NCBI GenBank assembly: GCA_052426225.1
Contig: JBNJNM010000006.1
Location: forward strand, 2,232,001-2,296,000
DNA length: 64,000 bases
From: Zancudomyces culisetae HAW-14-8
Taxonomy: Eukaryota; Fungi; Kickxellomycota
Reading direction: 5' to 3'
Program-made: the position numbers and the translations under genes
Part shown: piece by piece, positions 1 to 21,428 of the stretch
Layout: each line of letters begins with the position of its first letter
How positions within the stretch are numbered: position 1 is the first letter of the stretch
Notes under the pieces: model-generated
Database searches by the model: none
Told to the model about the DNA's origin: nothing
What the model saw: the letters and a program-made list of their open reading frames with translations, nothing else

Positions 1-1
1 T

Positions 2-2980
2 TGATTCTTCCTCAGTTGTTTCTATCAGACTACTTCGAGATAAATGGTCAGCAGGATTGACCTTCCCTGGTATATGCTCTATATCGAATTCGTAACTTCT
101 AAGAAACATAGCCCATCTAGCTAGCCTTCCACTTAATTCTTCGCCGTTAAACATATTTAATAATGCTTTATGATCGGTTTTTATTACAAACTTCCTACCA
201 TATAAATAAAACTTAAACTTTTTAACGGCCCAGACAACCGCCAACCCCTCCAAGTGACTGATCGAATAATTTTTCTCTGCATTACTGGTTGTTCTACTTG
301 CATACTCCACTGGTCTTTCTTTTCCTTCAATAACTTGTGATAGTATTGCTCCAACTCCACTAACTGCAGCGTCCGTCGTAACCACAAAAGAATAATCCCA
401 ATTTGGGTGCGCAAGCACTGGGGCTTCCGTCATCGCTTTTTTCAACTCTAAAAATGCTTCTTCTTGAGATTTTCCCCAGTTCCACTTTATTCCTTTCTTT
501 AATAACGCAGTTAGTGGGTTAGCTATTATAGCATATTTTTCAATAAACTTACGATAATAACCTGTCATCCCCAAAAATGACTGAACTTCTTTTATGCATG
601 TCGGTGACTTTAACTTTGAAATGGCTTCAATTTTTGTTGAACTAGTTGCAATACCTTCACCCGAAATAACATGACCCAAATAATCAATTTCTGTTAACCC
701 TATTTTGCATTTATCTTTATGCAACTGCATCTGGCCTTGTTTTAATAATTCTAAAGCTTCCTTAAGATCTTCTACATGACTGCTTGCACTTTTTGAAAAG
801 ACGATTATGTCGTCAACAAAAACAACTGCCTTCTTCCATAGAACTTTTTTCAACACAGTTTCCATTGTTCTTTGGAAAGTGGAAGGGCTATTTGTCAAAC
901 CGAAAGGCATGACGTTATAGTGGTAACTCCCCCCTCCCGGCAACGCGAATGACGTCTTTTCTCGGTCTTCTTCTGACATTTTTATTTGCCAAAAGCCGCT
1001 GAGTGCATCTAAAGTAGTAAAGATGCACGCACCAGCCAAGGCCATAAACAAATCCTGAATAATCGGTAGTGGGTATGAATCTTTGACTGTAACTGCGTTT
1101 AACTTCCTATAATCTGCGCAGATGCGCAGTTTACCGTTTTTCTTCTGGACAACCACCACCGGCGAGCACCACTCGGAGTTACTAGGTGCAATTACATTTT
1201 GCTCTAACATCCTATCTATTTCTTTTCCTACTTCTTCTTGTAGACGAAACGGTATCCTGTACGGTCTTTGCTTAATTGGCCTGTTATCCGTGAGTACTAT
1301 CCTGTGCTCGGCTACATTTGTTTGCTTTAACTTGTCGATATCATCTACAAATAATTCGTTATAGTCCTGGATCAAGGCCTCTAAACCTGCTACACCATCA
1401 CCTTGTATTCCTGTTGGTGATTCCGTGAAAAAATATAAATCCCAGGTTTCCTCTACAGTATGTGCTTCTTTGGTAGTAACTAGTGGTGTTACCACTTCTG
1501 CTCTATCCACAGGTAATCTTAGTTCTGGCACTGCTAGATTTAGACTGGCTTTATGTTTTAAAAGCCAATCCATACCTAATATTATTGTTGGTGACATATT
1601 TCCCAACACCACCAATGATGCTACGAACTCAATTTTACTAATCATAATTGGTACACCTGACACCACACCTAGAGTTTCATGACGTTTCCCGTCCGCTGTT
1701 ATAATAACGTGCGAACTCTTCATGTTAGGCTCCAAACCAATCTTGTTCAAAGCACCTGTAGTAATCACAGAGCATGCCGCCCCTGTGTCTACCACCGCTT
1801 TCCACTGTAACTGGTAAATCTCAACCGTCATACTACAGTTTGTAGTAGCTTTTTCCTGGATTCTTATCTCGTTTAGGGCGGTCTGCGGTGAAACTTCAAC
1901 TATGTTTTTCCAATCCTGTGCAATTTTTTCCGAATTTTGAAGTAATTGAATCATGCTAATTTTTGGATAGACTTTCTCCAACTCTTCCCTCAAATTGAAC
2001 TTTTTCACTCTATCAATCGTTCCTGACTCCGGTTGGGTGACTCTCTCCGCCCGAAGCTCCTGTGCGTCCATGTCTCCCGTATTTCTAATCTTAGCTGGTC
2101 TTCCAACTCGACCAGCCGCATCCGTTGCTTTTCTTTTTTCTACCATAAGTACTTCGTCTACTTCAGTAGGTTCAGTACCTATGGATAAAAAATTGACTTT
2201 CTTTTCCTCGTGCTCCTTTTGAAACCGTGGACATTCAAACTTCCGGTGACCTTTCTCATGACAATAATAACACTCCCATGTGCTTGCACGTTCCACCTTT
2301 GCTTGACTTCCCCACTTTTTAGTTGAAGCAACCGTTTGATCTAACTTTTCCAAGAGGCTGACACTAAGCTCTTGAAAGGTTTTGAGAAACTCTCCAAACT
2401 GCCCAGCTTCCGTAGTCAATTCTTTTACCGACTTGCCTGACCGGGTAGCAGCGTTCTTAGTAGTTGGCTTACTACTCTTAATTGCTGCCTGTATATCCCT
2501 CCTACAATTTGTACTTTGTTCCAACTTAGCCACTAACTTAAGTACCGCTTCTCTATCTAAACCTTCCTTATCTGAAAGTCTTTCCCTAATATCATCTGAG
2601 AACGTACTAACCAGTGAACCAAGTTTAGTCACCTCTTCCTTGATTCCTACTTGTTTCCATAACTTTTCCAATTCCATTTCTAGCTCCTCCAGACTTTCAA
2701 ACTCTGCTCGTTTGATTGTTCCAAGTCTGGTCCATGCTCCACTAGTAGAAAACACTGTACTATATTTCTTTTTGAACTCCTTAGTATATATTTCCCACGA
2801 CGTGAAACTATTCTTGTTCCTCTTATACCAGATTGTTTCAGACTTGCCTAGCCACAACTTAACTAACCCGACCCAATCCTCAGGGTCCCACTTGTTAATC
2901 TTCGCAATTAGTTGAAAGTCCTCAAGCCAGTCCTCGGCGTTTATTCCTTTCCCACTTTCGAATATAGTGACTTTGTCCAT
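2..2980 (-). CDS. Gag-Pol polyprotein of element A (partial, no stop within the window)
   Basis: ATG at 2980 (MDKVTIF). Zinc knuckle CYYCHEKGHRKFEC, protease VDTGAACS, RT YNVMPFGL and FVDD, RNase H TTDAAVSGVGAILSQ. Frame at both ends is consistent. Absent from the ORF track because it has no stop here. Confidence 0.9.
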   Translation of the reverse strand, partial: MDKVTIFESGKGINAEDWLEDFQLIAKINKWDPEDWVGLVKLWLGKSETIWYKRNKNSFTSWEIYTKEFKKKYSTVFSTSGAWTRLGTIKRAEFESLEELEMELEKLWKQVGIKEEVTKLGSLVSTFSDDIRERLSDKEGLDREAVLKLVAKLEQSTNCRRDIQAAIKSSKPTTKNAATRSGKSVKELTTEAGQFGEFLKTFQELSVSLLEKLDQTVASTKKWGSQAKVERASTWECYYCHEKGHRKFECPRFQKEHEEKKVNFLSIGTEPTEVDEVLMVEKRKATDAAGRVGRPAKIRNTGDMDAQELRAERVTQPESGTIDRVKKFNLREELEKVYPKISMIQLLQNSEKIAQDWKNIVEVSPQTALNEIRIQEKATTNCSMTVEIYQLQWKAVVDTGAACSVITTGALNKIGLEPNMKSSHVIITADGKRHETLGVVSGVPIMISKIEFVASLVVLGNMSPTIILGMDWLLKHKASLNLAVPELRLPVDRAEVVTPLVTTKEAHTVEETWDLYFFTESPTGIQGDGVAGLEALIQDYNELFVDDIDKLKQTNVAEHRIVLTDNRPIKQRPYRIPFRLQEEVGKEIDRMLEQNVIAPSNSEWCSPVVVVQKKNGKLRICADYRKLNAVTVKDSYPLPIIQDLFMALAGACIFTTLDALSGFWQIKMSEEDREKTSFALPGGGSYHYNVMPFGLTNSPSTFQRTMETVLKKVLWKKAVVFVDDIIVFSKSASSHVEDLKEALELLKQGQMQLHKDKCKIGLTEIDYLGHVISGEGIATSSTKIEAISKLKSPTCIKEVQSFLGMTGYYRKFIEKYAIIANPLTALLKKGIKWNWGKSQEEAFLELKKAMTEAPVLAHPNWDYSFVVTTDAAVSGVGAILSQVIEGKERPVEYASRTTSNAEKNYSISHLEGLAVVWAVKKFKFYLYGRKFVIKTDHKALLNMFNGEELSGRLARWAMFLRSYEFDIEHIPGKVNPADHLSRSSLIETTEEES

Positions 2981-3003
2981 GATTCAATTAGTATCGATGT
3001 AGA

Positions 3004-3021
3004 TTCCGACAGAAGGCACCA
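3004..3021 (-). promoter_or_regulatory. Primer-binding site of A (probably tRNA-Thr)
   Basis: + strand reads TT CCGAC AGAAGGC A CCA, a tRNA 3' end (T-stem, acceptor stem, CCA). Isotype inferred from the GCCTTCT acceptor stem. Confidence 0.75.
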
Positions 3022-3022
3022 C

Positions 3023-3388
3023 TGTCGTATAATAAAGAAATTTTATTTATACCTAATGTAAAAACAATATAATTTGTAACTCTAAGTAAGTATTATCCTT
3101 GATAACTAATACCACTTAAAGATTAACTTGTACTGATATATTGAGTGATTAGAATCTAATATTTATTAATGTGAACCAAAAAATCTGATAGATAAAACTC
3201 TCACAAAAACTCTACCAAACCTTAAATAAAAACTAATTACGATTAAAGGGATTCAATTTTCATTGTTTTTCCTTTACGTAATTTTAGCCAATAAAACCTA
3301 TCTAAAATAACTTTATAAAATTGAACTAAAAAATATACTAAAATAAACAAAACTAAACTAAAACATAGTACTATTGTACTATACGACA
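3023..3388 (-). repeat. 5' LTR of element A (366 bp)
   Basis: Terminal inverted repeat TGTCGTAT/ATACGACA, directly next to the PBS. Confidence 0.9.
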
Positions 3389-3391
3389 TGT

Positions 3392-3728
3392 TGTGGTGGA
3401 ATTTACTTCTACCAACGTTTACTAAATTTGTTATGATAATTATTTAATATATTTGTTATAAAACTAACTATACTGGTACGCTGCAAAAATTTGTTTATTA
3501 GCGTATCTTTATTTACTATTTTTGAGGACGCAGATTCAAATATTACTACTTAAACGTATTTAAATAAAAACTATTTTGATGAATTGCCAAGAAATCTTGA
3601 CTAAAAATAATTATAGATAAGAAATAAAATTGATAACTATTGAAAACTATTCCTTATCATATTCCCAAAAACCACAAGGGGAAAAAAATGGAATACGAAA
3701 CTCGTAATTTCCAATAATTCATACGACA
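3392..3728 (-). repeat. 3' LTR of element B
   Basis: Direct repeat of 8336-8672, TG...CA ends, preceded on the minus strand by PPT AAGGGGGGG. Confidence 0.95.
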
Positions 3729-3738
3729 GGTCCCCCCC

Positions 3739-5466
3739 TTAGCTCTGAGTGCCCCATGAAGAAACTGACGGCTGTCTAAATTGTCTTAACGTTGGTCTTA
3801 GCCGTGCTGTTTGTATCTCTGGTATCATATTTCTGTGTTCATGGTACTTCTTAAGCCTGTCGCCATTTACCACATCTTTGTTCCTTTGGTCGTCAGTTAT
3901 AGTATAAGTACCATTTCCATGCACTCGAATAACGGTGTAAGGGCCCTCCCATTTCGGGTCAAACTTTGAACTGGTTTGTTCCACATGCCTTAGTACTTTG
4001 TCGCCATTACCAAAACTCGATAGTCGCACCGTTTTGTCATATACTCCTTTTTCGTAGATCTTGTTTTTTATCATAGATTCGAATCCCGTTAGTCGAATGT
4101 CAGGGAGGTCCACACTGATATGCTCTATTCTTTCCTTCACGGCTTCATTAAAGTCATCAATCTCTGCTGCTGGTTTCCATGATATAGGTGTGTTTAACTC
4201 AACACCGTATAGTAATTCAGATGGGCTAAACCCAGTATTGCGATTTTTCATTGTTCTAAGAGTTAATAATAACTTACAGATATAATTATCCCAGTTCGCT
4301 TTATCATGTTGACACAATTTTGACAGTAAGTTTTTGATATTCTGGTTGAACCGCTCTACCTGACCATTTGTTTGCGGTCGGTATGCGGTTGTAGGTGTGT
4401 GGTGTATATTTAGAAATTTGTAGAAGTCAGTGGAGATGTCGCTCAGAAAATTGAATCCACGGTCTGTTATCAGTTGTGTTGGCACGCCGTAATATTGAAC
4501 TACATCATATATCAAAAAGTTAATAACAGTTTCAGTGTTTATGTTACTTACTGCTCTGCATATTGGCCATTTAGTCAAATAATCTATGGCTGACAATATG
4601 TATCGGTTTCCATTATTAGAAATTGGACTAATTGGGCCAACCGCATCCAGTCCCAAGATTTCAAACGGTTTTCTTGCCAGTATTGGTATGAGGTTTGTTC
4701 TCCTTGTCACACTTCCTTTATATCGTTGGCAGAGGTCACAGCTTTCCACTATCCGTTTTACCACTTGCAATAGATTTGGTCCTGTATACAACCTTTTTAC
4801 TTTCTCAAATGTGTTATTTATTCCTTCATGTCGCTCCAAGTGTATCTCTTTGATTTTGTCTTCTGCATTTACCTCGGTTAATACTTCTCGCAGGCCAAAC
4901 TTGGCTGAGTTTCTATGAAGCCTATCATCCAGGAGTCTGTATTTCAAAGCTTTGTTTCTGAGTCTTCTTCTAAATTCATCGTCGGCTCCTGGTGGATAAT
5001 TACCTGTCTCTAGATAATGTTTAATTGCTTGATAATAAAGGTTATCCATAGTAAATATATCCACCTCAACTTCACCCTCTTTTGTTCCTTCATTTGATTT
5101 ATAAAAATTTTCGTCTCTAGAAAGGTAGTCAGAAGGGTTGCTTCTTCCCGGTCTATGTCTGATGATGTAGTCATATTCGGACAATATAATACTCCACCTG
5201 GCTAACCTGCCGTTTAAATCTTTAGAGTCAAAAATTCTTACTAGCGCTGAGTGGTCAGTTACGATGTCAAATTGTCTACCCCATAAATAATTGCGAAACT
5301 TTGTTACTCCCCAAACTACCCCTAGTCCTTCCAAGTGGGTTGACGAATAATTTTTCTCCGCTGGACTTAAGGACCTGCTAGCAAATTCAATGGGATGGTC
5401 TTGATTATTTTTTTTTTGGGAAAGGATTGCACATATTCCGTTTTTTGAAGCGTCCGTTGTCAACAC
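3739..5466 (-). CDS. RNase H-integrase part of element B polyprotein
   Basis: TTDASKNG RNase H; HHCC motif (H-LERH...CDLC); DDE core (LDAVGP, TDRG, VERFN); WEGPY motif; no chromodomain. Confidence 0.93.
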   Translation of the reverse strand: MLTTDASKNGICAILSQKKNNQDHPIEFASRSLSPAEKNYSSTHLEGLGVVWGVTKFRNYLWGRQFDIVTDHSALVRIFDSKDLNGRLARWSIILSEYDYIIRHRPGRSNPSDYLSRDENFYKSNEGTKEGEVEVDIFTMDNLYYQAIKHYLETGNYPPGADDEFRRRLRNKALKYRLLDDRLHRNSAKFGLREVLTEVNAEDKIKEIHLERHEGINNTFEKVKRLYTGPNLLQVVKRIVESCDLCQRYKGSVTRRTNLIPILARKPFEILGLDAVGPISPISNNGNRYILSAIDYLTKWPICRAVSNINTETVINFLIYDVVQYYGVPTQLITDRGFNFLSDISTDFYKFLNIHHTPTTAYRPQTNGQVERFNQNIKNLLSKLCQHDKANWDNYICKLLLTLRTMKNRNTGFSPSELLYGVELNTPISWKPAAEIDDFNEAVKERIEHISVDLPDIRLTGFESMIKNKIYEKGVYDKTVRLSSFGNGDKVLRHVEQTSSKFDPKWEGPYTVIRVHGNGTYTITDDQRNKDVVNGDRLKKYHEHRNMIPEIQTARLRPTLRQFRQPSVSSWGTQS

Positions 5467-8158
5467 AAATCGTTCTTCCCAGTGGGAAAATCAACACAGG
5501 TGCTTTTATTATTGAATTTTTTAAATATTCGGCTGCTACACTACATTCAGATGTCCAATTATATTTAGTATCTTTTTTTAAAAGTTGATGTAATGGTCTT
5601 GCGTGTTGCGCATAATTCTGAACAAACTTCCTATAATATCCGGTTAGACCCAAAAAAGACTGAAGCTCCTTGACTGACTTTGGGTGTTCCAAATTCCTAA
5701 CCGCTTTTACTTTTGACTCGCTTGTTCTTATCCCTTCAGAGCTGATTAAGTGTCCTAAATATTCTAAACTGGTTTTTCCAAATGAACATTTTTCTTTATG
5801 AAGTTTAATATTATTGTCCCTCAGTAATCTGAACACCTCCTCCAAATCTTTTATATGTTGAAGTTTAGACTTTGAGAATATTATAATATCATCAATAAAT
5901 ACTAAGGCTGATTTCCATAGTACTGATGATAACACCCTTTCCATCAGTCTTTGAAAAGTCGCGGGACTGTTACAAAGACCAAAGGGCATCACATTATAAC
6001 AAAACATGCCCCCTCCTGGAATCGCAAAAGCAGTTTTGGGCTTATCAGAATCCTTCATCCTCACCTGCCAGAAACCGCTTAATGCGTCCAGAGTACTGAA
6101 TATATTAGCCCCTGCAACAGCAGTAAATATCTCTTCGATTACTGGTAGTGCATACTGATCCTTCTTGGTGACCGCATTCAACTTGCGGTAGTCCGAGCAT
6201 AGTCGAATCTTCCCATTCTTTTTCCAGACCGCCACTACTGGAGCACACCAATCAGAAACGCAAGGAGTTATGATACCTTGCTCTTCCATTTTGTTTATCT
6301 CCTCTGTTAGTTTTTCTCGCATATAATGAGGTACGCGGTAGGGCTTAGATTTAACAGGTTTTGCTTCTCCAGTGTCTATTTCATGAAGTATCCTATCCGT
6401 CTGTGTTAGATCTGACAGTTCAGTTGCCATAAGATCACTGTTTGCATCTATAATCCTCTGTATTTCCTCATCTATCTCCTCTTCCTGTAGCTCCGGTTTC
6501 TCTATCTTCTCTATTCCCACACCATATAACTCATACTCATTGTCTTTTGACTCAATTGTTATGTCTTTGCGCGTTGAAATTGACAGGGATATTTCATATT
6601 CTTCGTTGTTCAACACTAACTCATTGCTGTTTAAGTTGATAACTGCTCCGTGTCTTTTAAACCAGTTTGTTCCAAGGATTAACACATGAGTTTTCTGATC
6701 CATAACTGTCATGTCCACTGGAAACCTTTGCCCTGCAATTGTAAGTGGTACCTCTGAAATTATTCCCTTAGTCCCGTGTTTCCTCCCGTCTGCTGTCACA
6801 ATAATTTGGTTAGATTCTTTGTCAATATCTAATCCCAACACTTCAGCAAATGCATTTGACATTACCGAGCAGGCAGCGCCTGTGTCCAATATAGCCCAGT
6901 AGTTTCTTCCAAATATACTTATTATAGCCTTGCAGTTTGAACTTACATTTTCAATGCTGTTCACCTCTTTAATTTCATACTCCTCACCCCTTCTAACGTA
7001 ACTAATTAGCTCCTTTCGCACCTGTGGTGAAGCTTCTAGAAGCTGGGCCAAATTTATATTAGCTTGTATGCCTTGTAGCTCTTTCTTGATTGAATATTCA
7101 TCTTTGTCAGTTGTAAATTTAATAGGTACTGCTTTCTTCCGCTGAATTCTAGGTTTCAGGATGTCCCTATTAGGCTTAACTTCTATTGTTGACTCGCCTT
7201 CTCTTCTTTTTTTAGCTTCTTTTTCTGATTGTAATTCATTCTTCCTCTTTTCTGCTGCATAGATTTCAGCTTCATTTGCTTCACACTCAAAAACTTGACT
7301 GACTACGATATCATTTTCAACTTCCAAAAAATTTACTTCCCTCTTGTTAGTATTCACAGGCATTGCATTACTTCCCGATGCTACACTTGGTCCGGTTCTT
7401 GGATTAGCTTCCCTCCTAGGACATTGGTATGGCCAGTGTCCCGGCTCCCTACACTCGAAACAGAAAGGACTTTTTGGTGGTGGTCTGCTGTTGCCTGCCT
7501 TAATACTATTGATAATGTTGATACTGAGTTCGTCAAACTTTTTGACTATCTTTTCATACATAACTTCTGGATCATCTTTTATAGACCTAGCTTCTTGTAT
7601 TAGCCTTTCCTTAGTAACATTTTCAAAAAGATTTACTCCGCTACCCGTTGAAGTATCGTTGCACATACTTTCTAGTTGTTCATGTCTAACTAAATGATTT
7701 ATTGCTTCTTCCCATGATTCAGTACCTTTTTCAAAAATAAGCTTTTTAAATGTTGGTCTTAAGCAAGCGGTTAGGTAACGTAATTTATCTTTTTCTTCTG
7801 TTATACTTGCGGCTTTGAACAGTACTTGAAGTTTAGATGCAGTCTCTAGAATATCCATGCTATCCTGTTTGAATCCCTGGAGCTCTTCCCATGAAGCTAA
7901 CTCCCTTTCTTTGCTTTTAAACTGTTTCAAGAATAACTCCTTGCACTTTGTCCAATCCTTGAATTTGTCTTGATAAATTATGTACCATTGTTTTGCTTTA
8001 CCACCTAGATAAGACTCCACACAATCCACGTACTCTGCTTCTTCGAAATCGTTCTTTTTCATGTAAATCTCAAACCTTTTTACCCAATTTTCGGGGTCCT
8101 GCCATAGTGATCCGTTGAACTCTGTAGGTTCCAGTACTTTATAATTTTGTTTTTTCAT
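5405..8158 (-). CDS. Gag-PR-RT part of element B polyprotein (frameshifted near 5482)
   Basis: CFECREPGHWPYQC knuckle, LDTGAACS protease, RT motifs LCSDYRKLN, VMPFGL, FIDD. Confidence 0.93.
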   Translation of the reverse strand: MKKQNYKVLEPTEFNGSLWQDPENWVKRFEIYMKKNDFEEAEYVDCVESYLGGKAKQWYIIYQDKFKDWTKCKELFLKQFKSKERELASWEELQGFKQDSMDILETASKLQVLFKAASITEEKDKLRYLTACLRPTFKKLIFEKGTESWEEAINHLVRHEQLESMCNDTSTGSGVNLFENVTKERLIQEARSIKDDPEVMYEKIVKKFDELSINIINSIKAGNSRPPPKSPFCFECREPGHWPYQCPRREANPRTGPSVASGSNAMPVNTNKREVNFLEVENDIVVSQVFECEANEAEIYAAEKRKNELQSEKEAKKRREGESTIEVKPNRDILKPRIQRKKAVPIKFTTDKDEYSIKKELQGIQANINLAQLLEASPQVRKELISYVRRGEEYEIKEVNSIENVSSNCKAIISIFGRNYWAILDTGAACSVMSNAFAEVLGLDIDKESNQIIVTADGRKHGTKGIISEVPLTIAGQRFPVDMTVMDQKTHVLILGTNWFKRHGAVINLNSNELVLNNEEYEISLSISTRKDITIESKDNEYELYGVGIEKIEKPELQEEEIDEEIQRIIDANSDLMATELSDLTQTDRILHEIDTGEAKPVKSKPYRVPHYMREKLTEEINKMEEQGIITPCVSDWCAPVVAVWKKNGKIRLCSDYRKLNAVTKKDQYALPVIEEIFTAVAGANIFSTLDALSGFWQVRMKDSDKPKTAFAIPGGGMFCYNVMPFGLCNSPATFQRLMERVLSSVLWKSALVFIDDIIIFSKSKLQHIKDLEEVFRLLRDNNIKLHKEKCSFGKTSLEYLGHLISSEGIRTSESKVKAVRNLEHPKSVKELQSFLGLTGYYRKFVQNYAQHARPLHQLLKKDTKYNWTSECSVAAEYLKNSIIKAPVLIFPLGRTICVDNGRFKKRNMCNPFPKKK

Positions 8159-8315
8159 TTCGTTTTGTTATGAGTTTTAATTTTTATATTATTATTTTGT
8201 TATATTTATATTTATTTTTATATTATTTTTCTTGATGTTTAATATAAATTGTTGTAATGATATAATAAAAGATATTTTGTTTATATATAGATAATTCGAA
8301 TTAATAATTGTTTCA

Positions 8316-8333
8316 GCCTAGCTGGGAGCGCCA
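8316..8333 (-). promoter_or_regulatory. Primer-binding site of B (probably tRNA-Arg)
   Basis: TGGCGCTCCCAGCTAGG, 2 nt from the LTR; complementary to a tRNA ending TGGGAGC-G-CCA. Confidence 0.75.
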
Positions 8334-8335
8334 AA

Positions 8336-8672
8336 TGTGGTGGAATTTACTTCTACCAACGTTTACTAAATTTGTTATGATAATTATTTAATATATTTGT
8401 TATAAAACTAACTATACTAGTACGCTGCAAAAATTTGTTTATTAGCGTATCTTTATTTACTATTTTTGAGGACGCAGATTCAAATATTACTACTTAAACG
8501 TATTTAAATAAAAACTATTTTGATGAATTGCCAAGAAATCTTGACTAAAAATAATTATAGATAAGAAATAAAATTGATAACTATTGAAAACTATTCCTTA
8601 TCATATTCCCAAAAACCACAAGGGGAAAAAAATGGTATACGAAACTCGTAATTTCCAATAATTCATACGACA
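8336..8672 (-). repeat. 5' LTR of element B
   Basis: Direct repeat of 3392-3728, followed by the PBS. Confidence 0.95.
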
Positions 8673-8675
8673 TTG

Positions 8676-9363
8676 TGTTGTAATTTTAGTTTGCAGAAAA
8701 TTTCTCAGGAAATTTCCGCAACTAAACCTACAAAAAGTTCTGCTAATAGAGGGGGATTGTTACTGGAATAAGTTTTACTTTATTTAACCAGTCAACCCTA
8801 CCTTTTTAGCTTATATTTAATTTAGTTTTATGTATTTATTACTTCAATAAATGCGATAAAACTGGGTAAAATTACGCCCAACTCCTAAAATTTGGTGTGC
8901 AAAACAATTAATTTTGGTCCAAAAATTAGACTCTGATACCTTTCTGATACCCTTTGAAAATTGTGTTACGCTTCACTACCTATGTTTTTTTTTGGTTTTA
9001 GGTAGGTTTTTGCTCAATTCACAAATTTCAATTTTATAGAGTAAAATCAAGTATTTTAGAGCTAATTTGTATTTTATTTAATGAATAACTTTTAAAAATA
9101 AAAAGATAAAACCACCAAACTTGTGGTGAGGTTACTAGTAATATACTAGTACCTGACTAGCTATTTTATTAGAACTTTATATAATAGAAACTTAAAATAA
9201 AATAATTAAAACTGAATATTTCTCCAACATTTGGGTAATTTATTACCCAAGAAATCCCAGATTTCTTGCTCGAACACCCGAGATAACGGTGGTTATTCGG
9301 TGTTTGAGAAGCTGTATGCTGTTCATCCAATAGTTTAGCTTGGATAGAACTAAGCATACAACA
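8676..9363. repeat. Solo LTR C (688 bp), inverted copy of 10224-10911
   Basis: TGTTGTA...TACAACA termini, flanked by (A)TTG and ATTG. Confidence 0.85.
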
Positions 9364-9371
9364 ATTGTGTT

Positions 9372-10216
9372 TGTCGTAATAATCATAATTGGGAAGATCA
9401 TGATTATTATGTTCATCACGTGTCATACCAGTTCGGGTATGACCACTTGATGAGGATGCACCACTACCCCGTAGTGTGATGTGCATATAGGGGTGCTCGG
9501 GTGAGCTATTTCCCCTGTACAATGTCGGTGAGATGCTGCTCACGGACATTGGTTCTGGGCTCCTACGGATTTGGAGTTGACGGACACTTTCTGTCAACTC
9601 CCCAAGAGTCCGAGGGCTTAGTTCCCCGGTCTCTTGGTCCATGCTACTAGCCATACTCAGACTGGAGCTAGTTTCTGAATCCCTCTTGGATTCGCTTTTA
9701 CTATAAAAGAAATAGTTCATTTTTGGTTATTGGTTATTATAAATAATATTCTGAAGTCTGTTTTATTGTGTTTAAATAAATATACTATTTAATCCGTAAT
9801 TAGGACATGGATGAGGTTTTTCCATTTCCCTCTTCTTGTTCCTTAAATATAAATTTCTATTAAACTGCTACTATCTTCAAAACGTTTAAAATACTATTAC
9901 TTATGTACTATAAGAACTATTATGACTTGATACTGACTTCCTCTACATATTTTACTTGTGTAGTGAATGTTGAATTAGGTGTTGGGAACACCTAATAATT
10001 ATTACTTAATTTAGGATTTAGTATGAAGACATTTTTCATACTAAATTCTATCATTATTGAGTCGACTCAGCATGTAGAATTAATTTCATAATGTGTCGCT
10101 CATTTTCCAAATTGAATTTCATGCAGATACAAAAATTTAATTTTCATTCTGCGATGAGTGTACTTCAATTTGTACAACAATTGTACTTAAGTGTACAATT
10201 GCTCACTCATGCGACA
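9372..10216 (-). repeat. Probable solo LTR D (845 bp) containing an internal ORF
   Basis: TGTCG...CGACA termini like A and B. Flanks are not a direct TSD and boundaries are uncertain by a few nt. Confidence 0.6.
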
Positions 10217-10223
10217 AACGACA

Positions 10224-10911
10224 TGTTGTATGCTTAGTTCTACCCAAGCTAAACTATTGGATGAACAGCATACAGCTTCTCAAACACCGAATAACCACCG
10301 TTATCTCGGGTGTTCGAGCAAGAAATCTGGGATTTCTTGGGTAATAAATTACCCAAATGTTGGAGAAATATTCAGTTTTAATTATTTTATTTTAAGTTTC
10401 TATTATATAAAGTTCTAATAAAATAGCTAGTCAGGTACTAGTATATTACTAGTAACCTCACCACAAGTTTGGTGGTTTTATCTTTTTATTTTTAAAAGTT
10501 ATTCATTAAATAAAATACAAATTAGCTCTAAAATACTTGATTTTACTCTATAAAATTGAAATTTGTGAATTGAGCAAAAACCTACCTAAAACCAAAAAAA
10601 AACATAGGTAGTGAAGCGTAACACAATTTTCAAAGGGTATCAGAAAGGTATCAGAGTCTAATTTTTGGACCAAAATTAATTGTTTTGCACACCAAATTTT
10701 AGGAGTTGGGCGTAATTTTACCCAGTTTTATCGCATTTATTGAAGTAATAAATACATAAAACTAAATTAAATATAAGCTAAAAAGGTAGGGTTGACTGGT
10801 TAAATAAAGTAAAACTTATTCCAGTAACAATCCCCCTCTATTAGCAGAACTTTTTGTAGGTTTAGTTGCGGAAATTTCCTGAGAAATTTTCTGCAAACTA
10901 AAATTACAACA
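10224..10911. repeat. Solo LTR C' (688 bp)
   Basis: Near-identical reverse complement of 8676-9363 (one mismatch seen), flanked by GACA and GAC. Confidence 0.85.
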
Positions 10912-10914
10912 GAC

Positions 10915-11168
10915 TGTTGTATGCCTACAATAGGTGAAACATTTCCATTGGTTAATTGTGTTTTGTAATTTTTAGTTTGATTTTTTGTAGATTTTATTGT
11001 ATAAAATTGAAATTTTTGTTTAACTAAATAAATGTCCTCTTTTGCAAAATCCAAAGTACTATATAATAATTTGCAGCATATAGTAAAAGGTAAGTAAAAT
11101 GACCCGTCCCGTGTGTTATTTGGTGTAAAAAACACTAAATGGGACGTTAAACATGGCAACACACAACA
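10915..11168. repeat. Solo LTR E (254 bp)
   Basis: TGTTGT...ACAACA termini, AGAC on both sides. Confidence 0.75.
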
Positions 11169-11172
11169 AGAC

Positions 11173-11635
11173 TGTTATATAGTGGCTAGAGCTACCTCTA
11201 GACATTATTAATTATAACTTACCAATTACATATTTATTTCTATATATTAATATTTAGGTTTATCAATTAATATAAGTTAATATAATTATAGGTTATTTAG
11301 TATATTATGTGTTGCCTAGTTTTTTTCATCCTTCTGGATTTTTTCTACAGCAACATTCTGGTTTATTATTAATATTTAGTTTATGTTTTAAGTTTAAGTA
11401 TATATTTAGTTTTCAAGTATATAATAGTCATTTAATTATAAGTATAAATAGGGCTAGGAAACTAGCTATGAAAACATCATCAAATAAAAATATAACAAAA
11501 GGTTTGGTCTATATTCAATAAGTGTATAACTTTTATTTTGAAAATTACAAAGAATAGCACATAGGATAGTTAGTTATAATTAGAATATATTTACAAAAGC
11601 AATACGAAAATAGTGAATCTGTATTTTCGTCAACA
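11173..11635 (+). repeat. 5' LTR of element F
   Basis: TGTT...AACA ends, direct repeat of 16079-16541. Confidence 0.95.
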
Positions 11636-11636
11636 G

Positions 11637-11654
11637 TGGCGTCAGCGACAGGAT
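11637..11654 (+). promoter_or_regulatory. Primer-binding site of F (tRNA-Ser-like)
   Basis: TGGCGTCAGCGACAGGAT, complement of ATCCTGTCGCTGAC-G-CCA. Confidence 0.8.
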
Positions 11655-11682
11655 AAAGTTTAAAACCTATAGTAGTACAAAC

Positions 11683-14484
11683 TTGAAAATGAACGTACCT
11701 AAAACTTATGTAGCTAGTACAGGTATGGATCCAGAAGAATGGGCAGAAGAGTTCAGATTAATAGCAAAACTGAACAAATGGGACCCAAATGACTGGATCG
11801 AATTTATTAAACTGTATTTAGGCAACAACGAAAAGATTTGGTACAAAAAGAATATTAAGTCATTTACTAGTTGGGAAAACTTTGTCATTGCATTTAAAGA
11901 AAAGTTCAAATCAGTAAAATCTAAATCTCAGATTTGGGAAAGATTACACACCATCAAACAGGGCGAGTTTGATACCGTAGAAGAGTTGGAGTTGGAGTTA
12001 ACTACACTACTAAGTAGTGCAGAAATAAGTGATAATAAGCTCAAGTCAGATTGGTTGATTAGTACCTTAAGGCCAGAATTTAAAAGAATTGTTGAAGCAG
12101 AACAGCTTGACGACTGGGATAAAATTGTTACTAGAGTATTAAAGGAAGAGCAATCTATTCGTACAAACACTAAGAAAACACATTTAAAAGAATTGGAAAC
12201 AAAACAAAAGGACTATAATCGCAATGCAGCTTCTAAGACAGGAAAAAATGTAAAAGATTTGGTTAAAGAACAAAAGCCTTATGGACAATTTCTTAAAATG
12301 TTTGAAGAAATGAGCGTAAATTTATTAAATAAGGTTGACGAGGTCGTAGATAAAAAGATAAAAGAACTAGAGACTACTAAGCAGCGTTTTAACGGTCCTA
12401 GGAAACTAATATGCTATACTTGTCAGCAAGAAGGGCATACGAGAAATAATTGTCCACAATTGGTAAATAAGTCTGTAACTAACATTCAAAGTGAATCGTC
12501 AGAAAAAAATATAAACTTTATACAAATTTCGGATGAAACTGAAAATGAAGATATTGATATATATTCAGTGGAGAAGCGCAAGTCTAGTGCAGAGCAAGAT
12601 AAGGAAACCCCAAAAAGAGTTGGCAGACCCAGGATACATGAGCCAACACAGGTATCCACTAATAACGTAGAAAGTGTTCAAAATAATGTAGTAGCTGAAG
12701 ACTCTCAAAACATGTCCAATAGTACCACAAAAAAATCAGCAAGGTCCTTATCGTTAATTGACGAGTTAGAGAAAGTATACCTTAAAGTAAACTTACTACA
12801 GTTGTTAGATAGCTCAAAGACAATGTCGAAAGAATTAGTGGAGTATATAAATAAACAAAAATTATCAGAAGTTAATGAATTCGATGTTGAAGAAAGGAGA
12901 TTGACGAATTGTAAGGCTGTAGTTAAGGTTTTTGGACAAACCCTGTGGGCGGTAATTGATACAGGTGCAGCCTGTTCCGTAGTATCCTCAAGTTTAATGG
13001 AGGAATGGGATTTAGACCCAGAGACTTTTAATAAGCAAACCATAGTTACCGCTGACGGGAAACGCCACACTACCTTAGGCAAATTGAGTAACGTTCCACT
13101 TAAAATTTCTTCATTTGCATTTCCCGTTAATTTATGGGTCATGAACCGGAATGAGGATATACTCATACTAGGTACAGATTGGCTCCTGGAACATAAGGTA
13201 TCCCTAAATTTGCGTATTCCGGAGTTGCGATTACCAATTGAGAATGCTGAAATTACAACCAAGTTAACAACTTTTTCTAGCAAAAAATTATTTAAAGAAG
13301 AACAAGAAATATATTTATTACTCAAAGAAGAAACTCAAAGTAAAGTTGATGTAAATGTAATATTTAAGGATGTATTGGACGAGTTTACTGATATATTTGT
13401 TGATGACATCTCTGAGTTAACACAGACAGAAGTTATGGAGCACAAAATTGATTTGATTGATGAAAAACCAATTAAACTTCGACCTTATCGCATGCCACAA
13501 CAAACTCAGGAAGCAGTAAGATTGGAATTACAAAAAATGGAAGATAGGGGTGTGATATCACCATGTATTTCAGAGTGGTGTGCACCAGTTGTAGTGGTAC
13601 ACAAGAAAAACGGGCAATTGAGAATATGTGCCGATTATCGCAAATTGAATGAGGTGACGAGAAAGGACTCTTATCCTCTACCTATAATCGATGACTTGTT
13701 TATGGCTCTGGCGGGTTCAACCATTTTTACTTCACTTGATGCCTTAAGTGGTTTTTGGCAAATCAAGATGAGAGACTCTGATAAGTGCAAAACGGCATTT
13801 GCTATCCCAGGAGGGGGTAGTTACCAATATAACGTTATGCCCTTTGGACTTACAAACAGTCCAGCTACTTTCCAACGGGCCATGGAGGTAGTATTGAAAG
13901 ATGTGTTGTGGTCAAAAGCCGTAGTTTTTGTTGACGATATTATAATATTCTCGAAAGACGTTAATCAACATGTTGAGGATTTAAAAGAAGTATTTTTATT
14001 ATTGAGAAATAATGGAATACAGTTGCATAAAGAAAAGTGTATTATTGGCCAAACAAAACTGGAATATCTAGGACACACTATTTCCCAAGACGGTATTGGT
14101 ACTAGTCCAACCAAGATAGAATCTGTAAAAAAGATTCAAGTACCTAGTAACGTAAAAGAACTGCAATCGGTTCTTGGTCTCACCGGTTACTATCGTAAAT
14201 ATATACCTGGATATTCGAAAATTGCTAGCCCACTTACGACTCTATTACGGAAAAATAATCGCTTCGCATGGGGTCCGGAACAAACTTCAGCACTAAACGA
14301 GTTAAAAAATAAGCTTATTACTGCTCCAGTATTGGGTTTTCCTATATGGGATAAAGAGTTTGTACTTACTACGGATGCTTCTGTGGTAGGACTCGGTGCA
14401 GTATTATCACAAATTATTGATGGACAAGAACGGGTGATTGAGTATGCTAGCCGTACAACAAACAAGGCTGAAAAAAAACTATAG
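11683..14484 (+). CDS. Gag-PR-RT-RH part of element F polyprotein (probable start ATG at 11689; frameshift in the A8 run 14471-14478)
   Basis: CYTCQQEGHTRNNC knuckle, IDTGAACS, ADYRKLN, VMPFGL, FVDD, TTDAS. Confidence 0.93.
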   Translation: MKMNVPKTYVASTGMDPEEWAEEFRLIAKLNKWDPNDWIEFIKLYLGNNEKIWYKKNIKSFTSWENFVIAFKEKFKSVKSKSQIWERLHTIKQGEFDTVEELELELTTLLSSAEISDNKLKSDWLISTLRPEFKRIVEAEQLDDWDKIVTRVLKEEQSIRTNTKKTHLKELETKQKDYNRNAASKTGKNVKDLVKEQKPYGQFLKMFEEMSVNLLNKVDEVVDKKIKELETTKQRFNGPRKLICYTCQQEGHTRNNCPQLVNKSVTNIQSESSEKNINFIQISDETENEDIDIYSVEKRKSSAEQDKETPKRVGRPRIHEPTQVSTNNVESVQNNVVAEDSQNMSNSTTKKSARSLSLIDELEKVYLKVNLLQLLDSSKTMSKELVEYINKQKLSEVNEFDVEERRLTNCKAVVKVFGQTLWAVIDTGAACSVVSSSLMEEWDLDPETFNKQTIVTADGKRHTTLGKLSNVPLKISSFAFPVNLWVMNRNEDILILGTDWLLEHKVSLNLRIPELRLPIENAEITTKLTTFSSKKLFKEEQEIYLLLKEETQSKVDVNVIFKDVLDEFTDIFVDDISELTQTEVMEHKIDLIDEKPIKLRPYRMPQQTQEAVRLELQKMEDRGVISPCISEWCAPVVVVHKKNGQLRICADYRKLNEVTRKDSYPLPIIDDLFMALAGSTIFTSLDALSGFWQIKMRDSDKCKTAFAIPGGGSYQYNVMPFGLTNSPATFQRAMEVVLKDVLWSKAVVFVDDIIIFSKDVNQHVEDLKEVFLLLRNNGIQLHKEKCIIGQTKLEYLGHTISQDGIGTSPTKIESVKKIQVPSNVKELQSVLGLTGYYRKYIPGYSKIASPLTTLLRKNNRFAWGPEQTSALNELKNKLITAPVLGFPIWDKEFVLTTDASVVGLGAVLSQIIDGQERVIEYASRTTNKAEKKL

Positions 14485-16066
14485 TATTAGCCATTTGGAG
14501 GCTTTAGCAGTTATTTGGTCAGTAAAAAAGTTTAAGTATTACTTATGGGGACGTAAGTTTAAGATACGTACAGACCATAAGTCATTATTACAAATATTTA
14601 ATGGCACGGAACTTACTGGTAGAATTGCCCGCTGGGCAATGATACTGCGTAACTACGATTATTATATTGAGCACCTTCCTGGGAAAAATAATCCTGCTGA
14701 TACATTGTCTAGAAATAAAGAAGATTTTAATATGAAAGAAAATATCGAATTGGATATACTTTCAATGGATTTAGTTGATTATATAGATATAATACAGTAC
14801 CTTACAACAATGCAGTATCCTAAAGGAGCTTCAGCCAAAGAAAGAGAGAAAATACGTAACCGTTCTAGACAGTATCATTTAAATCAAGGAAAGTTATATA
14901 AAAAAGTAAATAAAGAATTAAAAGAAGTTCTACATGAAAGGAATTTTAAGGAAATTGTCACAAATATTCATAATGAAGGGCATGAAGGAATTGAAAACAC
15001 TTGGAATAGAGTTTCAAGTAAATACACTGGAAAAAATTTATATCAAGATGTTGTGGATATTGTAAAATCGTGTCACATTTGTCAACTTCACAAAGGTGGA
15101 AAAACGAAAAAAAATAAATTAGTGCCAATTGTTTCTTCAAGACCGTTTGAAATTTTTGGAATAGATGCTATTGGACCAATTGCACCAATTACAAAAAATG
15201 GGAATCGTTATATTTTGACAGCAATTGATTATTTCACTAAATGGCCAATTGCCATTCCAGTTTCTAATTTGCTAAGCGAAACAATTATAAATTTTATTAT
15301 TAACGAAATTATCGCAAATTATGGAGTCCCTCAACAAATAATTAGCGACCGTGGTTCAAGTTTTGTTTCGGACAATACAACAAATGTTTTTAAATGGTTG
15401 GGACTGAAACATAGTCCTACAACATCCTATAGGCCACAAAGCAATGGCCAGGTCGAACGATTTAACAGAACATTAGTAAACATACTTATTAAACAATGTA
15501 AAAGCGATAAGGAAAATTGGGACGAATATATTTGGAAGACTCTTATGGTGGTAAGATCACTAAAAAATAAATCTACAGGTTATACGCCTTCTGAGTTGTT
15601 ATATGGAGTAAATATTTGTTTACCTTCTACTTGGACTTACAATGGCGAGATTGAAAATGTGGAAGAAAATATTTTGAGTAGAATAAAAAGTTTTAAAATA
15701 GATATTCCTGAACTACGTGAACTTGCGTTCAAAAACTCGATAATTGCGAAACGATCGATGGAAGAAAGGTATAACCGCGATGTTCAACATTTTAAATTTC
15801 GAATCGGCGACACGGTATTGAAACGAGTAGAAATGGAAAGAAGCAAATTCGAAAGTTATTGGGAAGGCCCCTATACGGTTCAAAGAGTATTCTCAAAAGG
15901 AGCTTATATTATTAACGATCATCAAGGTAACCGTGAATTAGTAAACGGTGATATGTTAAAAATGTACTTCACAAATAAGAACATGATACCCGAAGTAACA
16001 ACTACGCTTAAATCCAAACTAAAAAGGTTTAAAAATAGAGAGCGGGATGAGGGCATCCACGCTTAA
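14438..16066 (+). CDS. RNase H C-terminus and integrase of element F
   Basis: HNEGH...CHIC, IDAIGP, SDRG, VERFN, WEGPY. Confidence 0.93.
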   Translation: MSMLAVQQTRLKKNYSISHLEALAVIWSVKKFKYYLWGRKFKIRTDHKSLLQIFNGTELTGRIARWAMILRNYDYYIEHLPGKNNPADTLSRNKEDFNMKENIELDILSMDLVDYIDIIQYLTTMQYPKGASAKEREKIRNRSRQYHLNQGKLYKKVNKELKEVLHERNFKEIVTNIHNEGHEGIENTWNRVSSKYTGKNLYQDVVDIVKSCHICQLHKGGKTKKNKLVPIVSSRPFEIFGIDAIGPIAPITKNGNRYILTAIDYFTKWPIAIPVSNLLSETIINFIINEIIANYGVPQQIISDRGSSFVSDNTTNVFKWLGLKHSPTTSYRPQSNGQVERFNRTLVNILIKQCKSDKENWDEYIWKTLMVVRSLKNKSTGYTPSELLYGVNICLPSTWTYNGEIENVEENILSRIKSFKIDIPELRELAFKNSIIAKRSMEERYNRDVQHFKFRIGDTVLKRVEMERSKFESYWEGPYTVQRVFSKGAYIINDHQGNRELVNGDMLKMYFTNKNMIPEVTTTLKSKLKRFKNRERDEGIHA

Positions 16067-16078
16067 GGGAGGAGGTTC

Positions 16079-16541
16079 TGTTATATAGTGGCTAGAGCTA
16101 CCTCTAGACATTATTAATTATAACTTACCAATTACATATTTATTTCTATATATTAATATTTAGGTTTATCAATTAATATAAGTTAATATAATTATAGGTT
16201 ATTTAGTATATTATGTGTTGCCTAGTTTTTTTCATCCTTCTGGATTTTTTCTACAGCAACATTCTGGTTTATTATTAATATTTAGTTTATGTTTTAAGTT
16301 TAAGTATATATTTAGTTTTCAAGTATATAATAGTCATTTAATTATAAGTATAAATAGGGCTAGGAAACTAGCTATGAAAACATCATCAAATAAAAATATA
16401 ACAAAAGGTTTGGTCTATATTCAATAAGTGTATAACTTTTATTTTGAAAACTACAAAGAATAGCACATAGGATAGTTAGTTATAATTAGAATATATTTAC
16501 AAAAGCAATACGAAAATAGTGAATCTGTATTTTCGTCAACA
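16079..16541 (+). repeat. 3' LTR of element F
   Basis: Direct repeat of 11173-11635, follows the PPT. Confidence 0.95.
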
Positions 16542-16545
16542 AGAC

Positions 16546-17008
16546 TGTCATATAGTGACATGAACCCTTGGTGATAAACTAATATTATATGTTTATCATC
16601 AAGTGAAATAATTAAATTATTAATATACTTTTAGTTTTAGTTTTTTTAGTATTCAATGAAACTGATTCATTGATGTTTTTTCTAAGAGTATTAGTTTATT
16701 ACTCAATTAAATTGTTTCAGTATTAGTTTATTTAGTTAGTATTAGTTCAATAGTTAGTTATTAGTATATTTATAATACTAGGAAAAGTATTTAAAGGGTT
16801 AGTTATTGCATAAGGAAATAAATATCATTCTATCATACAAGCTTTATAGTAGTAAATAAATAGTTATGATCAACTACAGATGTTTATATTAAGTTTATAA
16901 TAGTTTCAACTAAGTTTATAATTTATAACAATAATTATACGATACATATTATACATATATAAATAAGAAAAATATAAATAATTATAAGTAAAATTTAATT
17001 ATACAACA
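16546..17008 (+). repeat. Solo LTR G (463 bp), related to the F LTR
   Basis: Starts TGTCATATAGTGAC (F starts TGTTATATAGTGGC), ends ACAACA, same length as the F LTR; flanks AGAC and AG-AGAC. Confidence 0.8.
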
Positions 17009-17016
17009 AGAGACAT

Positions 17017-17089
17017 GGGGAACTAGCTCAAATGGTAGAGCGCTCGCTTAGCATGCGAGAGGTACGGGGATCGATACCCCGGTTCTCCA
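17017..17089 (+). tRNA. tRNA-Ala(AGC)
   Basis: GGGGAACTAGCTCAAATGGTAGAGCGCTCGCTT-AGC-ATGCGAG...GGATCGATACCCC...TTCTCCA; cloverleaf with G3:U70. Confidence 0.97.
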
Positions 17090-17091
17090 CT

Positions 17092-17164
17092 GCCCGGCTA
17101 GCTCAATCGGTAGAGCGTGAGACTCTTAATCTCAAGGTTGCGGGTTCGACCCCCGCGTTGGGCT
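17092..17164 (+). tRNA. tRNA-Lys(CTT)
   Basis: GCCCGGCTAGCTCAATCGGTAGAGCGTGAGACT-CTT-AATCTCA...GGTTCGACCCCC...TTGGGC; cloverleaf. Confidence 0.97.
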
Positions 17165-20138: not shown

Positions 20139-21428
20139 ATGGACTCACTGCTCTCAGAATTAGCAATGAAAACTGCTTCGATGGTAGGCCGTGCAGCATT
20201 TGGAGCAGCTAGTAGTTTAATTGTCAAACAAATAACCGAGTATATTAAGAAAGGAGCTAGCTTGGATAATAACCTAAATTCAAAAAAACGATACAACGAA
20301 CTTGTTACATTGAAGCATGAATTGCAATTGAAACTAAATGTATTACTCCCCATTGTACAATATATTGAAATTATGGCTACTAATCGGACCGATTCAATAA
20401 TAGAATACGCACTTCCGATTGTCGATGAAATAAAAATGATGATTGAGGAATTTTCGCTAGAGGGTCCATATCTAAAGATTGAAGAATCAAAAACAACCAA
20501 AGCTGTCGAACCTCTGAGAAAGGATACTAATTCACAGATTCCTCTACCTACCGAAATCAATGAAAAAATCCGCGCTCTATTGAGCAATATAAATGGGTAC
20601 CTACCTATTCTCAATCTGATTCTTTCAACTATCCAGAATTGCTCATCATCATTCCAAATTCATTCTACATTACCAATTTCGAAAACTATCGAGGCATCTA
20701 AACTAATCAGCTCCGGCTTGAAAATTACTTTCCCTGTTACATTATTCTATCTCTTCAAGTGTTCAGAGCGACCTCAAAATAAATCAGATTTTACTTGGAT
20801 GGAAAAAGTCTACAAAGCAGATTTGAAAATAATGACTAATCAAAAGTATAATCGCACGATAAACATTCTAAGAGATTTTAATGATGGCAGATTTCACAAT
20901 GAAGATGAAAAGGAATTCGAAATGCATTTTGATGTTTCGAGTATCCACAAAATGTTTTATTCGACTTCCGGATTGCTCTTGAATATCGAGGATTCAAATT
21001 CAGCTGTTTTAGTCTTGAAAATTACTTATAAAAACGAAATCGAATATTATGCTGTCAAAATGTTTGAAGATTCGGAAACAGTGCCTGAGTCATGCTCTGA
21101 TAGTGATTCTGAACTTGAGCTTGAGTCGGACTCTGCTAAGTCACTAGTTCGTAGGGCCTCCGATTGCGAAACGCAACTGTCGACCTGTAAAGATATCCAG
21201 CAGAACAATTCAGAAAATAAAAAAGATGACGGCTCTGGAATCTATCTATGCTCTGACATACGCCTGTTGGAGATTATCCTAAAACTAGCAGGGTTGGAGT
21301 CTTCTATGCAAAAGAGCCATCTTTTGATTCCGGATGAAATTCTCTTGTCTTATTTGGCCGAGCATAATTCACGCAGCGTATCCACTTCTAGTGCAAAGTT
21401 TAACAGTTCATCTACTTTGAATAGCTAA
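20139..21428 (+). CDS. YRB30: Ran-binding protein, Yrb30-like
   Basis: N-terminus MDSLLSELAMKTASMVGRAAFG, and motifs DFNDGRFH and MFYSTSGLLLNIED typical of the fungal RanGTP-binding family. Confidence 0.75.
   Translation: MDSLLSELAMKTASMVGRAAFGAASSLIVKQITEYIKKGASLDNNLNSKKRYNELVTLKHELQLKLNVLLPIVQYIEIMATNRTDSIIEYALPIVDEIKMMIEEFSLEGPYLKIEESKTTKAVEPLRKDTNSQIPLPTEINEKIRALLSNINGYLPILNLILSTIQNCSSSFQIHSTLPISKTIEASKLISSGLKITFPVTLFYLFKCSERPQNKSDFTWMEKVYKADLKIMTNQKYNRTINILRDFNDGRFHNEDEKEFEMHFDVSSIHKMFYSTSGLLLNIEDSNSAVLVLKITYKNEIEYYAVKMFEDSETVPESCSDSDSELELESDSAKSLVRRASDCETQLSTCKDIQQNNSENKKDDGSGIYLCSDIRLLEIILKLAGLESSMQKSHLLIPDEILLSYLAEHNSRSVSTSSAKFNSSSTLNS

Follow-up and report, generated by a model that had tools for sequence, protein, structure and literature searches.

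Introduction

The window analysed here, a stretch of 64,000 nt of the insect-gut fungus Zancudomyces culisetae HAW-14-8 (contig C6, positions 2232001-2296000), contains LTR retrotransposons and solo LTRs which stand end to end with a few nucleotides between them and point in two directions. This arrangement raises the question of how so many elements came to lie side by side and what determined their positions. Based on the window alone, the initial annotation had read three of them (A, B and C) as successive insertions growing leftwards, each shifted by 1 nt, and had predicted that the stack ends at an unseen minus-strand Pol III gene beyond the left end of the window.

The genome carrying the locus comprises 27.09 Mb in 25 contigs. 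The published assembly of Z. culisetae, which is based on PacBio HiFi reads, comprises 27.2 Mb in 26 contigs, 3.03 Mb of which are retroelements, and the genome paper makes no mention of LTRs or tRNA genes (PMC12611240). A host gene at 20139-21428 of the window matches a Z. culisetae protein with 100% identity.

The structure of the locus was read from one genome assembly, including 29 kb to the left of the window; negative coordinates denote the C6 position minus 2232000. The tRNA gene to the left of the window was called with ARAGORN and confirmed with Rfam. The genome-wide sample consisted of the present locus and 60 loci around LTRs of the Z' and C families, which were chosen by LTR and not by tRNA gene.

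Two stacks between divergent tRNA genes

The predicted gene was found. The single tRNA gene in the 29 kb left of the window is a tRNA-Arg(ACG) on the minus strand, which lies 13.6 kb from the window and 14 nt from the nearest element, Z (Table 1). Between the 5' ends of this gene and of the tRNA-Ala gene on the plus strand extend 30,660 nt (~30.7 kb), which hold ten insertions and merely 54 nt of junction letters. Two Ty3/gypsy stacks meet here back to back, one anchored on tRNA-Arg and the other on tRNA-Ala. According to primer sites and purine tracts, Z, A, B, C and the central solo LTR Z' point towards tRNA-Arg, and C', E and F point towards tRNA-Ala, the sense of C being taken from the primer sites and purine tracts (PBS/PPT) of full-length members of its family.

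Table 1. Features of the locus from left to right; positions refer to the window unless preceded by C6.
Feature	Position	Strand	Remarks
tRNA-Arg(ACG), left-arm anchor	C6:2218284-2218356 = -13716..-13644	-	ARAGORN and Rfam
Junction tRNA-Arg to Z, 14 nt			TATAT, TGTT, TGTCG after the tRNA 5' end
Z, full-length	C6:2218371-2230308 = -13629..-1692	-	identical 846-bp LTRs; TSD GTCG
Y, chromovirus-type, nested in Z	C6:2222234-2227944 = -9766..-4056	+	5-bp TSD ATACC
A, part outside the window	from C6:2230309		distal LTR split by Z
A, part in the window	1..3388	-	366-bp LTRs (proximal 3023-3388); TSD TGTT; landed 9 nt from tRNA-Arg
B	3392..8672	-	337-bp LTRs (2 mismatches); TSD TTGT; landed 8 nt from tRNA-Arg
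C, solo LTR, 688 bp	8676..9363	-	TSD ATTG; landed 7 nt from tRNA-Arg
Z', central solo LTR, 845 bp	9372..10216	-	~80% like the LTR of Z; flanks TGTT / AACG, without TSD
C', solo LTR, inverted copy of C (1 difference)	10224..10911	+	TSD GACA; first unit of the right arm
D, solo LTR, 254 bp	10915..11168	+ (sense taken from neighbours)	TSD AGAC
E	11173..16541	+	463-bp LTRs (1 mismatch); TSD AGAC
F, solo LTR, 463 bp	16546..17008	+	TSD AGAC; identical to three other genomic copies
Tandem tRNA-Ala(AGC) and tRNA-Lys(CTT), right-arm anchor	17017..17164	+	

Classification of the elements

A, B, E and Z possess direct LTRs with TG...CA ends, a pair identity of 99.4-100% and 4-bp target site duplications (TSDs), as well as TGG-type primer sites at a distance of 0-2 nt from the LTR and, before the 3' LTR, G-rich tracts. 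According to Pfam, the domains of A, B and E are arranged in the order protease, RT, RNase H and integrase, and the best PDB match was Ty3 Gag-Pol (E 6e-83). By LTRs, domain order and PBS/PPT, the elements are Ty3/gypsy (Metaviridae) LTR retrotransposons; their nearest named homologues were detected in Zancudomyces, Smittium and Calcarisporiella. A contains one uninterrupted gag-pol frame of 1432 codons. In B (gag-PR-RT-RH-IN) and in the gag-pol region of E, the frame is broken once within RNase H, close to a stretch of adenines (~5400-5490 and ~14440-14480, respectively).

The element Y, which is nested in Z, is of a different kind. It carries Chromo and SH3_Tf2-1 domains, and a 9-nt match between its primer-site region and its own LTR suggests that it may be self-priming; in these traits and in its 5-bp TSD it resembles the Tf1/sushi-like chromoviruses. 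Y nests in other elements away from tRNA genes and stands outside the tRNA-targeted group, from which it differs in TSD length and integrase type.

Order of insertion

The junctions between A, B and C are those given by the initial annotation (A, TGT, B, TTG, C, ATTG), and its TSDs for the three elements proved to be exact 4-bp duplications once Z, A, B and C were peeled off in turn, as was that of Z. Some junctions measure 3 nt because an element landing further out than its predecessor clips the first bases of the predecessor.

A TGTT flank had furthermore been expected beyond A. It lies directly before the first five bases of A, TGTCG, which are followed by Z and then by GTCG and the rest of the LTR, Z having landed in nt 2-5 of the distal LTR of A. 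The six letters ATTGTT before the first base of A were fixed by the inference from within the window, and their chance occurrence at the local base composition amounts to ~9e-4; the 5' end of a minus-strand tRNA gene within 15 nt adds to the significance of this match. The distal LTR, which had been placed about 2 kb away, was indeed located 1.3-1.7 kb left of the window (-1691..-1327), but it is split by Z, lacks its first base where it abuts the LTR of Z, and the stack runs on for another 12 kb.

From the centre outward, the landing distances upstream of the mature tRNA end were 7, 8, 9 and 14 nt for C, B, A and Z of the left arm (tRNA-Arg) and 5, 6, 6 and 6 nt for C', D, E and F of the right arm (tRNA-Ala). 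F is now 8 nt away from tRNA-Ala, the interval consisting of AGAC and an unexplained extra AG. The leftward order C, B, A, with Z as the next insertion, is confirmed by the far flank and consistent with divergence. Z' is the most diverged unit of the stack, with 15 differences to its nearest copy; C shows 4 to the nearest fetched copy outside the locus, the LTR pairs show 2 (B), 1 (E), 0 (A) and 0 (Z) differences, and F has identical copies elsewhere. The divergence thus agrees with the insertion order derived from the duplications.

These distances bear on the shift of 1 nt per insertion. Z landed 5 nt further out than A, and the distances in the right arm run 5, 6, 6, 6, so that a fixed shift was rejected for both arms. 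That C, B and A lie 1 nt apart reflects scatter within a narrow window of insertion.

Recurrence in the genome and in Smittium

The same positioning was observed throughout the genome-wide sample. In all of the 17 tRNA genes standing 5'-most at the sampled loci an LTR end lies 2-14 nt upstream (17/17), a count which describes precision and side of insertion and not the share of tRNA genes hit, since the loci were chosen by LTR. Fifteen of these LTR ends were recognised by library match and two by terminal motif alone. Further cases at 7-9 nt from a tRNA gene were found in the A, C and D families (from coordinate lists only), and the stacks of the sampled loci contain ~28 additional LTR-like units.

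Most families share their direction with their neighbours, and the A, C and F families have the same sense as the tRNA gene where this could be tested. The Z family does not follow this rule: its members point in the same direction as their neighbours in 6 cases and in the opposite direction in 7, and at tRNA genes 4 have the same and 3 the opposite sense.

In a relative from Smittium culicis, whose integrase is 50% identical to that of E, the 3' LTR ends 6 nt upstream of a tRNA-Met(CAT) gene in the same sense. This is the single Smittium case next to a tRNA gene, and the second LTR of that contig is inverted. Two other Smittium contigs contain LTR-like ends a few nucleotides apart. No tRNA gene was detected in the fetched stretches of relatives from Calcarisporiella, S. 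mucronatum and two further S. culicis contigs, short contigs being uninformative in this respect.

With positions, duplications, order and both anchors read directly from the locus, and with the recurrence observed in the genome and in Smittium, we consider it very probable that Ty3/gypsy families insert here in stacks targeted to tRNA genes. Several related families would target the Pol III initiation region, inserting 2-14 nt before the mature 5' end and generating a 4-bp TSD. Since the promoters of tRNA genes are internal, the target would stay usable after each insertion. The next element would land between the tRNA gene and the previous element, often clipping the first bases of the latter, and the stack would grow away from the gene with its youngest unit adjoining the tRNA.

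Random insertion followed by selection, or a preference for other elements, with tRNA genes lying nearby by tolerance, is hardly credible as an explanation. The nesting of Y in elements away from tRNA genes could serve as a precedent for it, but, as described above, its TSD length and integrase type set Y apart. Furthermore, selection cannot place independent insertions in a 12-nt window, on the 5' side only, with ordered overlapping TSDs and mostly in one orientation, so that the distance data largely refute this explanation.

The centre of the locus

If the later insertions are removed, the locus reduces to tRNA-Arg, 11 nt, the solo LTR Z', 8 nt and tRNA-Ala. The initial annotation had pictured two divergent Pol III genes whose shared upstream gap had expanded by more than 17 kb. 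The divergent pair exists at the distance given above, but the preservation of the gap was overstated, with ~19 nt of non-element DNA left. The flanks of Z' show no duplication, and later insertions cannot have hidden it because both flanks are intact. The missing duplication implies either a loss of the original spacer or a later joining of two tRNA loci.

The insertions of the Z and Z' type whose two flanks can both be read divide into 11 with an exact 4-bp TSD, 3 with a single mismatch in the TSD and 4 without any. Three of the four TSD-less cases, namely the present locus, L015 (AATG / ACAC) and L030, are found at the transition from a left-pointing to a right-pointing arm; for the fourth, the Z' element of L007/L005, a position at a polarity switch is not clear. 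Outside the three TSD-less centres, the TSD is present in 14 of the 15 Z-family insertions. At a further polarity switch, L054, the centre is a TSD-less LTR of another family, G13 (GTTT / CAAC), a family without demonstrated two-way insertion; some of the minor families were assigned their direction from two or three neighbours.

An error of the assembly, introduced through the Z' LTR or the inverted pair C and C', could in principle mimic such a centre or the whole join. It is very improbable, as the published assembly is based on PacBio HiFi reads far longer than 845 bp (PMC12611240), the private variants of Z' are spread evenly over its length, and a consistent TSD of its own brackets each of C and C'. 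An inversion of the centre between C and C' was likewise rejected, each of the two keeping matching inner and outer TSDs.

Z' is probably a recombinant solo LTR, the original spacer having been deleted by LTR-LTR recombination. One LTR of the Z' family may have stood in the sense of tRNA-Arg at 11 nt from this gene, and a second one against the sense of tRNA-Ala at 8 nt from the latter; because the family inserts both ways, the two would have formed direct repeats. Recombination between them would have removed the original spacer and left the solo LTR at which the two arms now meet. LTR-LTR recombination is common at this locus, which contains four solo LTRs besides Z'.

The absence of a TSD in all four evaluable centres would also be expected if the centre arose from one abnormal integration, in which the element ends were joined at the sites of the two divergent promoters and the DNA between them was deleted. 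Both ends of Z' lie at targeting distance (11 and 8 nt), as does the visible side of the L015 centre (10 nt), and Z' carries no chimeric signal. Nevertheless, we regard this scenario as unlikely. Two target sites would have to be captured by a single intasome or in two half-reactions, a rare event according to what is established about integrase chemistry, whereas LTR-LTR recombination demonstrably is common here; moreover, the left junction of L030 lies ~47 nt inside another LTR and not at a tRNA gene.

Alternatively, the stack could mark a rearrangement breakpoint, at which distant tRNA loci were joined by translocation or inversion through ectopic recombination between LTRs of the Z' family. 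The TSD-less centre and the lack of remaining unique spacer DNA are compatible with such a joining, for which dozens of near-identical LTRs at tRNA genes could have served as substrates. However, the reciprocal junction (AACG followed by the start of Z') is absent from the assembly, and the flanks of the Z' copies that were fetched do not contain it either, although it could have been hidden by a later insertion or lost. A comparison of Z' with 13 other copies revealed no chimeric breakpoint, the differences being evenly spread. Taken together, the missing breakpoint and the missing reciprocal junction favour deletion over translocation without proving it, and we consider the joining of distant loci improbable. 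To the explanation as a whole, targeted stacks with a centre formed by spacer-deleting recombination, we assign a probability of roughly 80%.

Targeting and comparison with known systems

Ty3 of Saccharomyces cerevisiae generates a 5-bp TSD and inserts in both orientations. The elements described here share with it the Metaviridae domain order, the insertion in the Pol III start region and the best match to a solved structure. They differ in their distance of 2-14 nt from the mature end, in the 4-bp TSD and in an integrase without room for a vestigial chromodomain. [quoted passage not shown]

By analogy, a Pol III tether similar to that of Ty3, connecting integrase to TFIIIB, may be presumed for the present elements. 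Of the 1547 residues of Ty3 Gag-Pol, the match covers none beyond residue 1444; A continues for ~30 residues after the integrase CTD, B and E end in a similar way, and no Chromo match was obtained with Pfam in the integrases of A, B and E. Since these integrases are too short for a vestigial chromodomain, the tether contact cannot be assumed to be identical to that of Ty3. The integrases of A, B, E and the Smittium element end in a common short basic tail, from which that of the two-way family Z differs. A link between tail and orientation would be a lead only, as a single two-way family enters the comparison. It is rather improbable that the Harpellales lineage evolved a Pol III tether of its own, in which the short tail takes the place of the chromodomain and also fixes orientation, with stacks being founded by single spacer-deleting integrations steered by two divergent tRNA promoters.

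The closest system in behaviour is Tj1 of Schizosaccharomyces japonicus, which is likewise a Ty3/gypsy element inserting just upstream of tRNA genes. Tj1 is found 5-12 bp upstream of mature tRNA 5' ends, always in the orientation of the gene; its TSD measures 5 bp, its PBS is self-priming, and gag is separated from pol by a stop; multi-family ordered stacks are not described in the available parts of the Tj1 paper (PMC4600332). In contrast, the present elements have a 4-bp TSD, TGG-type primer sites and, in A, a fused gag-pol frame, and Z inserts both ways.

The closest system in build is DGLT-A of Dictyostelium, which combines a single gag-pol ORF, the lack of a chromodomain, a TGG primer site near the LTR and many solo LTRs, and which is inserted 13-33 bp from tRNA genes in either orientation at low copy number (PMC5006619). 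All of these structural traits and the insertion just upstream of tRNA genes are shared by the present elements; the distance of 2-14 nt distinguishes them from DGLT-A, as do the insertion of the latter in either orientation, its low copy number and its occurrence in another kingdom. The elements of Z. culisetae work like Ty3, Tj1 and DGLT-A, yet by TSD length, priming and integrase tail they are neither Ty3 proper nor Tj1, the likeness being one of behaviour and build.

Significance

A mechanism of this class is already known from yeasts and slime moulds, and a literature search retrieved no report of precise tRNA-gene targeting by LTR retrotransposons in this fungal lineage. The present findings extend such targeting to early-diverging gut fungi, in two genera. 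The locus contributes a full record of two arms and, together with the sampled loci, a pattern of TSD-less centres, and its overlapping TSDs provide a base-exact order of invasion by many families. Furthermore, orientation-locked and two-way families on one target offer a natural comparison for how integrase fixes direction, a question left by the Tj1 paper (PMC4600332). The TSD-less centres finally suggest that tRNA-anchored LTRs also delete or rearrange the DNA between tRNA genes.

Elements of the stack

The RNase H regions of the Ty3/gypsy elements B (window 5400-5490) and E (window 14440-14480) each contain one frame break near an A run, which reflects either a genuine change or a residual sequencing error. 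Element E (window 11636-11655) and element Z, left of the window (L001:6440-6462), have a primer-binding sequence of about 18 nt in common, despite an identity of only 34-46% between their proteins. The primer-binding sequences of A and B are different ones.

The solo LTR C (window 8676-9363) and its inverted copy C' (window 10224-10911) differ at a single site, whereas at least 3-4 differences separate them from all other fetched copies. They either originated from the same burst or were subject to gene conversion between inverted copies. The solo LTR F, nearest to tRNA-Ala, is separated from the expected AGAC duplication by two surplus bases, AG (window 17009-17016), and we can only guess at slippage as their origin.

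Related elements and neighbouring genes

The double unit of Z (Table) ends 4 nt from another tRNA-Arg(ACG), and a single ACAA duplication flanks the entire array. Element Y is present in many copies, and its nesting inside other elements was observed. Nucleotides 336-344 of its LTR are complementary to a 9-nt stretch downstream of its 5' LTR, which suggests that Y may be self-priming.

Table. Repeat arrays, nested element and host genes (G000, genome of strain HAW-14-8; C6 and C12, contigs)
Feature	Location	Description
Three Z LTRs, 5376-nt spacing	G000:C6:1001075-1012672 (L026-L028)	Two Z units with common middle LTR
Four F-like LTRs, ~2379-nt spacing	G000:C12:1891537-1899135	Tandem array of short unit, from coordinates only
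Element Y	G000:C6:2222234-2227944 (L002:9234 to L001:4944)	Chromovirus-type, nested, 5-bp target-site duplication
Ordinary host genes beyond the stack	Window 20139-57667	Ran-binding protein, PAK-type kinase, OPT transporter, carbamoyl-phosphate synthase large chain

No Pfam match was obtained for the ORFs at window 35192-38548 and 55406-57667.

On the Smittium culicis contig LSSN01000175.1, both copies of one LTR (L065:6014-6339 and 9499-9823) flank a lone pol region in opposite orientations, owing to either an assembly error or a rearrangement.

Tandem tRNA genes

Tandem tRNA pairs spaced by 1-3 nt are frequent (Ala-Lys, Glu-Met, Gly-Pro; window 17017-17164 and loci L021, L022, L047 and L054). 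Such a pair likely forms a single transcript, and the LTR is located in front of the upstream gene only.
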